Assembly (NCBI GenBank): GCA_965637545.1
Contig: OZ281495.1
Location: forward strand, 3,720,001-3,784,000
DNA length: 64,000 nt
Direction: 5' to 3'
DNA from: Phallusia mammillata
Lineage: Eukaryota
Shown here: piece after piece, positions 29,056-58,167 of the stretch
Position numbering within the stretch: position 1 is the first letter of the stretch
Layout of the letters: the number at the start of each line of letters is the position of its first letter
The notes under the pieces: model-generated
Told to the model about the DNA's origin: nothing
The model's input: only the letters and a program-made list of their open reading frames with translations
The model's database searches: none
Made by a program: the position numbers and the translations under genes

Positions 29056-31254
29056 CTAACTTTGATGTATATTCTGGTTATGCTGCGCTTGAAATTTGAC
29101 AAAGTTGTCAGGAAAAACTCCAGTCTTGCCCTTCCGAGTTCCCTCGCACCAACCTTCCTCCACTTGCTTAATATTTGTTATGACGTCTCCCACTGTAAGT
29201 GTCAGTTCATCTGATGCTTCTGCCTCGTAGTCAAATAGAACGATAGCTAAAATCAACAACCAAATATCAAATATTCAGGAAAATTGCGATTGATATACAA
29301 CCTTCAAAGATACTTTTTTACTGTACAAACCTATTTTAATTGCTAATTTACGACAGTCGAAGTCTTAAGTAGGTTTCTCTTAAGCAAGATTACTTTAGAA
29401 ATTATTTGTTTTACAGGAACCGATAACCGATCCTTTAATATCCTTTGCCAATGGTTAATAAAAGTACAGTTTATTTATGCTAATCATAAAATATAATCTC
29501 TTTTTCAATCTAAAGTAATCTTATTTATGCACTTACCTATTTTGTTTTTCTCTTTGGTTTCCATCACCTGCGGTTAAAAATAAGTACTTGATTTGCTACG
29601 TCCATTTTATGTTTGGTTTATATGCAACTCATTACGCGAGGGAAATGTAATCGAATGTACTTCCCCTCAACTATGTAGGGTTGGACAGAAGTACAGAATT
29701 AACAGCTGCATTTATATTGATTTATGATTCTTACTGAAGAAACAACCAAGATTCCAAATAGAAATCAAAAATATTATCACCAAACGTAAATATCCATAAA
29801 ATTACAACCAAATGTATGCATCTCTAGCGCTCACAACTGCAATGATAATATGGTAAAAACCGATCCAAGTTTCGAAGATTTTCTTCGTACGTTTTGGTTT
29901 TTGAAAAAAACAATTTTAAACTTTTTCTTTTCTGCACCTCAAGTAATGTGTGGCATTGGAGCACTCACCTTTTTAGCATTTACTTGAGCTGATTATTCAG
30001 CTTCCACTTCTTGTGGTTGAGATGCTGCTAATGTTGTTGGTGCTGTAGGTTCCTCGTCGACAGTGGCAGCGAAGTTTGTTGGAAAAAGTCCTTGCTTTCC
30101 TTTGCAGTGACCCCTGGCCCAACCCGTCTCTATCTAATTAACATAAGAAGCAAGTGGTTTGTTCCAAGATTTTTTTTTAATTCGCCCAGACAGTTAAATA
30201 CCATATGTCTACGACTGGCAAACACTTCTACATTAACATTGTTTTCAAGTAACAACTTGACTGGTAAAAATACGTGCATTTTGCCGTCTATTTACTTGTA
30301 AAGCGATTGTTTGTGCTTATAGTGTCAAAGAATTAAAAAAAAACTTATTTGGTCGACATCAATCGATTTAATAGGAAAACAGTTTTAACATCGTCAATGA
30401 TAGCATCATATTTAAAACACAATTATTTATCTTTTTCGAAAAATGAAGCATTGGGATTTGTTTTACTCCTATAAATACAACAAAATGAAGACCCACATCT
30501 CTATACACGTCGATTGTATCGCCAACTTTCAACTGCAGTTCATCAAAATCTTTTGGTTCGTAGGAAAATAAAACTTTCATACGTCGAATCACCTTTATAA
30601 CTGCTCACAACAAAGATGGAATAAATTTAGTGTGCTGGCCCTGAGTTATAGTCTAATCAAAAAGTACGTTGCTTGAATATATACCAAGTGTAACAAAACA
30701 TTTTCAAAACCTTTTTTGGGGGGGAGGCAAGACATTTTCTCAGCAAAGCGCATGAATTTCAGTTTAACATCGGGAATATAGATGATATAGTCAAAATGTA
30801 AAGACCAAAAAGTTTCAAATTATAGTTTTTGCTTTAGTATATGCCACATTTATCCAATATGCTTACCATATTTCTGTGCTTCGTTTGGTTCGACCATCTA
30901 AAAAGTTATTTCAATTTGTGTTTGTATTATAATCGATAAAACAATCGGTTATATGTTAAAGACATAGTGTTGCAAATTAACTGCTGTGCAAACAAAAACG
31001 TTATTCTATGCTTGCGAGTACAAATGTTGGTTTAAACATCTTGAACTTAGGCCATATCCCATTTTTGTCCTGACAATCAGAAAAGTTTAGGTTGCTTTCT
31101 ACCTTGACAAAGTTATCAGGAAAAACTCCAGTTTTCCCCTTCAGAGTCCCCTCACACCAACCATCCTCAACTTGCTTAATATTGGTTATGACGTCTCCAA
31201 ATTCAAGTGTCAGTTCATCAGGTGCTTCTGCCTCGTAGTCAAATTGAACAACAG
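29056..31254 (-). CDS. Three SH3 domains of CIN85/CD2AP type (3' exons of kinase-1 model)
   Basis: Exons 31254-31103 ([16 protein letters not shown]...GWCEG...GVFPDNFVK), 30592-30497 and 30133-29969 (second SH3), 29567-29537 and 29246-29056 (third SH3). GT-AG boundaries with compatible phases. In-frame TAA at 29995-29993 after the second SH3. Confidence 0.85.
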
Positions 31255-31488
31255 CTAAAATAACAACCGAATATCAAATAATGATGAAAAAATTTGTTTT
31301 ATAATTTAAGTGCTACTTATTTATAAATGCATTGGATACCAGGAACCATTTGTTTGCGGGACAAGTTAAGGCTTTGTGACGTGTAACTACTTGTGCGAAT
31401 GTGTTTTTCCGAAATCAGAAATGTTCAACAAATTTAACTTTCGGGATTCGTATAAATCAGTTGCAAAAACATTCAATGCATGTTTCAC

Positions 31489-56896: not shown

Positions 56897-56934
56897 AAAA
56901 GATGATTTAACTAATGTTTTGTTAGTGGTTTTAC

Positions 56935-58167
56935 CTTCGAAACGACCAGTTCTTGGGGAAAAGTAATGAAGCGGTACGCGACTTTCTGCGTTGAATGGAT
57001 GGTTTACAACCATTTCCCTGGCAACACTTGACACTTGGGAACGTAGACTTTCGGGGTTTTGTTTTTTTAAAAGTTTTTTCAAATCGATGTTTATTTCGGT
57101 CATTGTGGGACGTTTTGTTGGATCTTGATCCCAGCATCTCTCCATCAATAGTTGGAGTTGCTCTGCGATTTCTCTGTCTTCACCGACCAAAGTTTGCATC
57201 CAATCCTGTATTTCCTGGCAGTCTGGTCTTTTGCCTTTCATAATTGCGTCAAGCAATCGGTTTTGATCTCCACGTGGATAGGGATGTTTGCGAGAAAGTG
57301 CCATGTGGATTGTCATTGCAAATCCGTAAACATCGTGTTCTTTAATTGGCTTCATGGTGGGATCCTTCAGTTTTTCAGGAGCGGTGTAGTAGGGAGTGTA
57401 TTGGGGTCTGTCTTTTTTGCTTCGTTTCAACGGATTCATAGTTGCCAAAGTACTATAAGTTGCCAATTCCGCGCTACCAAAGTCGCCGACCTTGCATTGG
57501 AGCTCTTCAGTGAGCATAATGTTTTCGGGTTTTAAGTCCTCATGTATCAAACGTTTGCCGGGTAAATTGTGACAGGAAGCCATTGCCGATGATGTTTGGG
57601 ATAAGAAGCGAACGAGCACAGCAAGGCTCAGTTCTTTGGATGTATCAAGAAGTAGCTCTCTGAGGTTGCCACCTTTACAGTATTCCATTACAATGCCCAT
57701 TGTGAAAGGCCATTTGACGTAACCAAGAACCCGAACGACATTTTCATGATCTGCTTTCAGCAAGTGTTGAATTTCTTCTTTAATTCTAGGAATATTATTT
57801 AATATCAACGTGTAAAAATTTTGACCAAAATATCTTTTAACATACATTTTTTCCAGACGCGCCTTCTCCCGTGGTCCACCAGTGATTGCAAAAACTTTGA
57901 TAGCAACTTCTTGCTTTAGACCTTCATGGTAACCCGTTATGACATCCCCGAAACCTCCTGAACCGGCCTCGTAGGAATTAGGATCACACGTGATGTCATC
58001 ACTGGCAATTTCTTTCAACTGTATTTTTTAGTAAAACGGTTTTAATGACATTTAAAATCCAAAGGTAGTAAATTTTTAAGCAAAACAAAATATGTTTGTA
58101 AAAAATTCTGAACACTGAAAGTTCATTATATATCAAGAATTTTACTTACTTCATTTGTTGAAGACAT
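56935..58167 (-). CDS. Kinase 2: non-RD TKL/RIPK-like Ser/Thr kinase
   Basis: Exons 58167-58150 (MSSTNE), 58018-57846 (173 nt, same length as in kinase 1) and 57785-56935 (HEDLKPEN, DFG, APE, RCW...RPT). The donor after FEG matches the kinase-1 donor after FYG. Confidence 0.93.

Follow-up and report, generated by a model that had tools for sequence, protein, structure and literature searches.

Two genes of a probable tail-swapping family of RIPK1-like kinases in a putative tandem cluster of the ascidian Phallusia mammillata

The 64,000-nucleotide stretch of Phallusia mammillata DNA analysed here (assembly GCA_965637545.1, contig OZ281495.1, positions 3,720,001 to 3,784,000; hereafter the window) contains two genes for kinases resembling RIPK1, which we call K1 and K2, and is probably a segment of a tandem cluster coding for members of a tunicate-specific RIPK1-like kinase family. 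Both genes lie on the minus strand, as do all four TPR-tail sequences found in the window, which holds just two kinase domains. Pfam placed a protein kinase domain in each of the large open reading frames (ORFs) 31877-32767 and 56795-58018, a TPR at the end of ORF 54781-55551, and two SH3 domains (29056-29259 and 30368-30592). The window has no N, its GT-AG introns are short, and its G+C content was 34-47% in 2-kb windows (mostly 34-40%). Searches and folds were carried out exon by exon or with natural database proteins.

The K2 gene (54781..58167, minus strand) was modelled as nine exons totalling 2349 nucleotides (nt), which code for a protein of 782 amino acids (aa) with a RIPK1-like kinase, a linker rich in S, T and Q, and a predicted TPR-solenoid tail. 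Its exons are as follows.

58167-58150, minus strand: exon 1, 18 nt, starting with ATG and coding for MSSTNE
58018-57846, minus strand: exon 2, 173 nt
57785-56935, minus strand: large kinase exon of 851 nt (phase 2 at entry, phase 1 at exit), with HEDLKPEN, DFG and APE intact
56774-56646, minus strand: symmetric phase-1 exon, 129 nt
56565-56509, minus strand: symmetric phase-1 exon, 57 nt
56419-56243, minus strand: symmetric phase-1 exon, 177 nt
56175-56071, minus strand: symmetric phase-1 exon, 105 nt
55859-55782, minus strand: symmetric phase-1 exon, 78 nt, with a weak GTTAAT donor
55541-54781, minus strand: terminal TPR-tail exon with a phase-1 acceptor, 252 aa

An original prediction, made from the sequence of this window, had K2 run through four or five symmetric phase-1 exons into a TPR exon to give about 780 residues. 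The model contains five such exons, counting the one with the weak donor, and the junctions proposed for the two genes (31489/31254 in K1 and 56071/55859/55541 in K2) fall on exact GT-AG boundaries. A word-indexed search with the K2 ORF as query retrieved a P. mammillata LOC108950821-like protein (P0003) that is truncated at its 5' end and consists of the C-terminal end of the kinase, a linker and a TPR tail, with 63-67% identity to K2. In a protein-to-genome alignment, P0003 takes the same path through the linker exons and TPR exon of K2. The alignment departs from the K2 ORF precisely at the predicted 56935 donor and picks up again in the predicted exons 56565-56509, 56419-56243 and 55541-54781. 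Exon 55859-55782 is without homologue support, and its omission leaves the frame intact. A stop-containing exon at 55987 is possible, but nothing in the analysis backs its use. An AATAAA is present at 54738, downstream of the TPR exon.

The K2 tail (252 residues) was 67% identical to that of P0003 and matched Pfam TPR_1 at 30.7 bits against a cut-off of 27.8, with TPR_12 just under its cut-off. AlphaFold2 folded it into 12 helices with a predicted local distance difference test score (pLDDT) of 94.3, and Foldseek matched the model to the TPR domains of KLC1/2, LGN/Pins and NASP (probability 1.0, template-modelling score 0.35-0.56). These are peptide-binding solenoids onto which the predicted tail superposes, although identity to them is 11-17% and one repeat is detectable by sequence. 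The K2 tail is thus modelled as a TPR alpha-solenoid of the KLC/LGN type.

The K1 gene was modelled as eight exons running to an in-frame stop (29993..33876, minus strand), with a 533-aa product that comprises a RIPK1-like kinase, a linker, a first SH3 domain (SH3-A), a spacer and a second SH3 domain (SH3-B). Its exons, together with those found past the stop, are listed below.

33876-33859, minus strand: exon 1, 18 nt, starting with ATG and coding for MAATNE
33560-33388, minus strand: exon 2, 173 nt
32780-31915, minus strand: large kinase exon of 866 nt (phase 2 at entry, phase 1 at exit)
31605-31489, minus strand: linker exon, 117 nt, phase 1 at both ends
31254-31103, minus strand: exon for SH3-A (CIN85/CD2AP SH3-A type), which has a phase-1 acceptor but lacks its own start codon
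30897-30867, minus strand: spacer exon
30600-30497, minus strand: first exon of SH3-B, 76% identical to the SH3-B of the relative P0122 (described below)
30133-29969 (coding to 29993), minus strand: second exon of SH3-B, 56% identical to the P0122 SH3-B and holding the in-frame TAA
29567-29537, minus strand: spacer mini-exon past the TAA
29246-29056, minus strand: SH3-A', a terminal exon for a third SH3 domain that duplicates SH3-A and ends in its own stop

The two genes had been predicted to share an 18-nt ATG exon (MAATNE or MSSTNE), a 173-nt exon and a large exon with a phase-1 donor, and all three were recovered where they had been placed, with the 18-nt and 173-nt exons having the same lengths and phases in both. 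At the protein level the large exons were 64% identical (E 1e-119) and the 173-nt exons 60%, which marks K1 and K2 as clear paralogues. The linker exons of K1 and K2 were just 32% identical to each other, yet both align with the first linker exon of P0003 (65% over 26 residues in the case of K1), and this common partner ties the two weakly similar exons together, as had been proposed.

All of the motifs GxGxFG, VAIK, HxDLKPEN, DFG and APE were intact in K1 and K2. The ratio of nonsynonymous to synonymous substitution rates (dN/dS) was 0.19-0.28 for the kinase exons, with 0.28 for the large exon of K2 against that of K1, and these exons are under purifying selection. Judged from their motifs, both proteins are apparently active Ser/Thr kinases of the non-RD class. 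The best PDB match was RIPK1 (E 1e-30 for K1 and 9e-29 for K2). RIPK4 and RIPK2 came next (about 1e-20 to 1e-21), ahead of RIPK3 (1e-15). The non-RD catalytic loop is shared by the aligned RIPK1, where it reads HKDLKPEN. A search for the RHIM core tetrad (I/V-Q-I/V/L/C-G) found it in none of the K1 and K2 exon peptides, nor in a separate TPR-tail exon downstream of K1 (the orphan TPR exon, see below). Pfam searches of the coding ORFs gave only Pkinase, SH3 and TPR, with no death domain, and neither P0003 nor P0122 contained a death domain. The linker exons are at most 59 codons long.

In RIPK1-4, tails made of a death domain, CARD, RHIM or ankyrin repeats direct a similar kinase into different complexes. 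By their sequences K1 and K2 fit this broad RIP-kinase-like plan of a TKL kinase with a variable tail, having intact kinase motifs, an N-terminal kinase, a disordered intermediate region and a C-terminal interaction module that varies between paralogues. Unlike RIPK1-4, they have no RHIM tetrad, death domain, CARD or ankyrin repeats, and the tails of the ascidian family are instead CIN85-type SH3 domains, a TPR solenoid, a ZU5-like module or Kelch. We therefore class K1 and K2, on sequence grounds, as RIPK1-like kinases and not as RIPK1 in the strict sense. The lack of a RHIM and a death domain agrees with a report that found no tunicate homologues of RIPK1 in which a kinase is combined with both of these domains (PMC12119088).

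The SH3 domains of K1 resemble those of CIN85 (SH3KBP1) and CD2AP. The best PDB matches of SH3-A were 2bz8 (SH3KBP1) and 2krm/2j6f (CD2AP), at E 5e-16, and the SH3-B type, searched with the contiguous P0122 sequence, was also closest to SH3KBP1 and CD2AP chains; we take the matched entries to be the A and B domains, respectively, of these proteins. K1 shares with CIN85/CD2AP the order of A followed by B. In contrast to CIN85/CD2AP, its SH3 domains come after a kinase and not at the start of the protein, its third SH3 copies A, and it has no SH3-C, proline-rich region or coiled coil; by exon comparison and tblastn, none of these three and no further SH3 exons were found anywhere in the window. 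The SH3 units are phase-1-symmetric, one of 183 nt at 31254-30867 (SH3-A with its spacer) and one of 300 nt at 30600-29537 (SH3-B with its spacer), and phase-1 donors are available at 31489, 30867 and 29537.

The continuation of K1 into a CIN85/CD2AP-type SH3 array, as originally proposed, held for SH3-A and SH3-B, but the reading frame meets a TAA (29995-29993) inside the second SH3-B exon, and the third SH3 lies beyond it. Since this stop falls inside SH3-B, the plain product of K1 is the 533-aa protein with two SH3 domains. P0122 has Glu at the corresponding position, and all K1 exons are open apart from this single codon. A good GTGAGT donor is found 25 nt further on, and K1 transcripts spliced onward from it would bear a premature stop, as the TAA precedes the donor; no poly(A) signal was found in the 500 nt following the TAA. 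SH3-A' would be in frame only if the TAA were bypassed or read through, giving 615 aa. SH3-A' was 86% identical to SH3-A in amino acids and 88% in nucleotides, with the similarity extending into the end of the intron, and the pair gave dN/dS 0.19 at dS 0.41 (Fisher p = 0.0017). This constraint since the duplication indicates that SH3-A' has been coding for most of its history.

The top match of an exhaustive representative search was P0122 (CAB3265595.1, 'RIPK1-like', P. mammillata, 768 aa), in which a kinase 79-81% identical to that of K1 is followed by a long linker, in which units are repeated, and by one SH3-B, without SH3-A. The MASTNE that it contains runs straight into the residues of the next exon, as in our models of exons 1 and 2 of K1 and K2, which supports the 18-nt first exon. 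Its C-terminal tail (residues 708-747) corresponds to a linker-type exon in another frame (compared with 31605-31492, minus strand), which could come from a transcript entering a duplicated linker exon or from an assembly artefact. Both architectures, kinase-linker-TPR tail and kinase-linker-SH3-B, occur in transcript-derived proteins of P. mammillata. Their naming style and the run-in of 5' untranslated region at the start of P0122 point to a likely origin of the Phallusia proteins in the egg, embryo and larva transcriptome of PMC7237864. That resource is a MorphoSeq short-read de novo developmental transcriptome with a consensus built in peptide space, in which the longest peptide per transcript was kept and models were named by their best Ciona match (PMC7237864). 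The adjoining of the kinase and SH3 exons in the genomic window backs the kinase-SH3 architecture independently of transcript assembly. A word-indexed search with the SH3-B of P0122 returned P0122 alone, with no other kinase-SH3 relative and no ascidian CD2AP. A kinase-SH3 model from Clavelina (P0140) was rejected as a parallel, as its SH3-SH2-tyrosine-kinase part resembles a Src-type gene fused into the model.

The family was found in Phallusia, Ciona and Clavelina, and ZU5-like, Kelch, TSP1 and SPRY modules were seen on relatives:

P0127, P. mammillata: kinase with Kelch
P0123 and P0135, P. mammillata: kinase with a ZU5-like module
P0147, P. mammillata, 939 aa: kinase domain without the catalytic Asp and DFG, with a ZU5-like module
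P0129, Clavelina lepadiformis: kinase with TSP1
P0187, Clavelina lepadiformis: SPRY with kinase
P0222, P0188 and P0216, Clavelina lepadiformis: relatives with kinase and TPR tail
P0231 (LOC100180183), Ciona intestinalis: kinase with TPR tail

P0147 is pseudokinase-like: its catalytic loop reads HGN instead of HxD, and the DFG is missing. The architectures had originally been described as unrecognised. This did not hold, as proteins of the family are already in public databases, unstudied and under automatic names ('RIPK1-like', 'uncharacterized'), and our literature search found no paper describing this ascidian kinase family.

Several of the Clavelina paralogues have consecutive accession numbers on one contig, from which we take tandem arrays to be typical of the family. 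When a kinase-region tree was built by maximum likelihood, K2 was sister to the pair of K1 and P0122 (96-98 by the Shimodaira-Hasegawa-like approximate likelihood ratio test), the Phallusia ZU5 types formed the sister clade, and the Ciona and Clavelina TPR-tail kinases fell in the other half of the tree. Tail type therefore does not simply track kinase phylogeny. In Ciona LOC100180183 (L001, 6001-9406), a single 1.18-kb exon encodes both kinase and linker; the TPR-tail region is entered after a phase-1 intron and is then divided by a phase-2 intron. From this gene structure, phase-1 entry into the tail is common to a distant paralogue and the post-kinase intron is not. When every retrieved protein was compared with the window by tblastn, no module types beyond those described here, e.g. 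Kelch or TSP1, were detected.

Several tail sequences of the window stand apart from the K1 and K2 models:

21277-20436, minus strand: orphan TPR-tail exon with a phase-1 acceptor and 279 stop-free codons, lacking its own kinase, 7.8 kb downstream of the K1 SH3 array
19930-18345, minus strand: ZU5-like terminal module of about five exons with a stop at its end, homologous to the C-terminal parts of P0135 and P0147 (tblastn)
46246-45989, minus strand: TPR-tail pseudo-fragment interrupted by in-frame stops, matched by both P0003 and P0121 in tblastn
4512-4273, minus strand: TPR-tail fragment, the C-terminal third only, adjoining a duplication boundary
63939-62982, minus strand: second ZU5-like module, upstream of K2, with self-BLAST similarity to 18150-19135 (also matched by tblastn with P0147)

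The orphan TPR exon shared 60% identity with the K2 tail and 61% with P0003, with dN/dS 0.43 against the K2 tail; it is an alternative terminal exon or else an ancestral one that was left stranded. No poly(A) signal was found in the 500 nt after its stop. In tblastn searches, the stretch from the K1 SH3 array to this exon gave no kinase exon and none for the Sushi-like part of P0121, and linker regions had no match between 21300 and 29000. P0121 is a P. mammillata protein that carries the same tail with a weak Sushi-like match, a hydrophobic stretch like a membrane span and no kinase, as a single de novo transcript model. The TPR tail therefore occurs in unrelated contexts, i.e. on kinases (P0003, K2, Ciona, Clavelina) and on the Sushi-like transmembrane P0121. 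We considered the orphan exon as part of a visible P0121-type gene and rejected this, since tblastn with P0121 found no Sushi-like or transmembrane exons.

The ZU5 assignments are tentative. On P0135 and P0123 the Pfam matches to ZU5 had E 0.0015-0.003, under the gathering score. All matches of a profile of the ZU5-like module (E 0.0035-0.9) were to ankyrin or ZO-1 chains and fell on or overlapped the ZU5 domains there, the better matches being the ZU5 domains of ankyrin-2 and ZO-1 (E 0.0035-0.008). AlphaFold2 gave the module a pLDDT of 37.6. The first exon of the set starting at 19930 is without an obvious phase-1 acceptor.

We consider it likely that these genes belong to a tail-swapping RIPK1-like family, in which a fixed 5' kinase unit and a linker are joined to an interaction tail entered in phase 1. 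Each gene would begin with the 18-nt ATG exon, the 173-nt exon and the large kinase exon ending in phase 1, and would continue with a disordered, S/T/Q/P-rich linker of symmetric phase-1 exons before the tail is entered, again in phase 1. In the window, the modules bounded by phase 1 at both ends are the five K2 exons, the K1 linker and both SH3 units, and both TPR-tail exons enter in phase 1. As all these boundaries share one phase, tails could be exchanged by exon duplication or insertion with the frame kept, and the symmetry of the SH3 units would allow such insertions. The common ancestor of K1 and K2 would have borne a TPR tail, which K2 is predicted to retain as a solenoid of the KLC/LGN type. 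CIN85-type SH3 exons would then have been inserted after the linker in the lineage of K1 and P0122, leaving the old TPR-tail exon, together with a ZU5-like module, downstream of K1 as stranded or alternative terminal exons.

By analogy with RIPK1-4, the kinase would provide a common signalling output and the tail would pick the recruiting complex, with the linker as a flexible and probably regulated spacer. The SH3 domains would bind Pro/Arg motifs, as in CIN85/CD2AP, and the TPR groove would bind a peptide.

Several points weigh against this reading. The TAA in SH3-B is followed by a good donor but, over the next 500 nt, by no poly(A) signal, and K1 may be a decaying copy or a target of nonsense-mediated decay. 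The junction of the K1 linker with SH3-A (31489/31254) is without homology backing, as P0122 has no SH3-A, and it remains inferred from the gene model; indeed, every K1 and K2 splice junction of this genome is a model junction, and the weak K2 exon 55859-55782 may go unused. Among the relatives, the Phallusia transcript proteins could include chimeras of paralogues, given the de novo assembly, and the post-kinase phase-1 intron is not family-wide, with the kinase and linker of the Ciona gene in a single exon. The function proposed for the family is inferred throughout.

The original prediction of interchangeable modules on one kinase stood in so far as the same RIPK1-like kinase carries different phase-1 tails. 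The sensor role proposed alongside it drew no support from the results. The prediction had overlooked the orphan TPR exon (21277-20436) and the ZU5-like exons (19930-18345), which leave two alternatives to tails that are simply specific to each paralogue, namely replacement of one tail by another and use of alternative terminal exons. Under the second, alternative splicing of K1 would choose among three 3' terminal cassettes, namely the SH3 array, the TPR exon (21277) and the ZU5-like module (19930), which we regard as credible but unlikely. The orphan TPR exon would suit such use, being intact over 279 codons with a phase-1 acceptor and dN/dS 0.43, with no kinase exon or Sushi-like exon of the P0121 type separating it from K1; K1 offers its three phase-1 donors (31489, 30867 and 29537), and SH3-A' and the ZU5-like module each have their own stop. 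However, a 7.8-kb gap holding an integrase fragment intervenes between the SH3 array and the TPR exon, the orphan exon has no poly(A) signal in the 500 nt past its stop, and the first ZU5-like exon is without an obvious phase-1 acceptor. The proposal is also built from gene models, and K2 exemplifies a simpler pattern with one dedicated tail per gene.

It is improbable, in our judgement, that the locus is largely duplication debris, with K1 dying, the extra SH3, TPR and ZU5-like exons as relics, and the apparent modularity in part an artefact of decay. The TAA in exon 8 of K1, the two TPR fragments (one bearing stops) and the dense segmental duplications and long terminal repeat (LTR) elements of the window are what such a history would leave. 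Against it, the K1 exons are open save for one codon, the kinase motifs are intact, the orphan TPR exon has no stops across its 279 codons, SH3-A' has evolved at dN/dS 0.19 since its duplication (p = 0.0017), and the same architectures are transcribed in P. mammillata.

Least probable, and in our view very unlikely, is that the SH3 exons are a separate CD2AP/CIN85-like gene or fragment and that K1 ends at or just past its linker exon: the order of SH3-A then SH3-B is that of SH3KBP1/CD2AP (with the PDB entries presumably their A and B domains), the frame would reach a TGA about ten codons on if the 31489 donor were unused, and the K1 junctions of this genome are known as models, but SH3-A has a phase-1 acceptor and no ATG and starts 234 nt past the linker donor, which leaves no room for a promoter and first exon, P0122 links a K1-like kinase (79-81%) to SH3-B (76%) while the genomic adjacency is independent of assembly, and the window has no SH3-C, proline-rich or coiled-coil exons.

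As an extension of the tail-swapping reading, the TPR tail could be a tunicate-specific adaptor that couples the Sushi-like, receptor-type P0121 to RIPK1-like kinases through tail-tail contact or a shared partner, with the SH3 array, TPR tail and ZU5-like module as alternative K1 cassettes; we put this forward as a tentative proposal that is rather unlikely to hold. Under it, the TPR tail may take the place that death, CARD or RHIM modules have in vertebrate RIPK pathways. Within the amphioxus innate-immune network, signalling domains (TIR, NACHT, death-fold, LRR, caspase) are shuffled into architectures that vertebrates lack (Zhang et al. 2008, PMC2575513). The family described here resembles that network as a lineage-specific expansion with recombined domains in an invertebrate chordate; it differs in that TPR is not mentioned in that paper and RIP appears there only as human RIP2.

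On the tail-swapping reading, ascidians would keep a RIPK1-like kinase core joined to other interaction modules, with phase-compatible exons easing tail exchange. Vertebrates have the tunicates as their sister group. Should the tails route the kinase into different complexes, the family would amount to a natural experiment in how a kinase of cell death and inflammation is rewired. The insertion of an SH3 array, an ancestral tail exon that was possibly left stranded and the duplicated fragments would capture intracellular exon shuffling in progress. The family members are also candidates for coupling receptors to kinases in tunicate innate immunity or development, with the immune role hypothetical.

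The window also contains mobile elements and duplications. About 670 bp downstream of the K2 stop is a degraded LTR retrotransposon (48511-54113, plus strand) with gag carrying a zinc knuckle, an aspartyl protease and further pol-like ORF pieces, the latter read by eye as reverse transcriptase; its LTRs (48511-49118 and 53498-54113) are 84% identical. A young LTR-like pair (38185-38928 and 41925-42668, plus strand) is 98.5% identical, and the element it bounds (38185-42668) holds a 278-aa ORF (40144-40980) without a Pfam match. The integrase-core (rve) fragment of a transposable element lies at 28018-28802 (plus strand), just downstream of the SH3-A' exon. There are two large direct segmental duplications, 4648-9483 with 10811-15676 (94% identical) and 1-2031 with 35590-37620 (98.9% identical). 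In the latter, a copy of the 5' flank of K1 lies at the left edge of the window, an indication that the tandem array continues past that edge. At the other end, the ZU5-like copy at 62982-63939 probably forms the 3' end of a gene whose start lies past the right edge.

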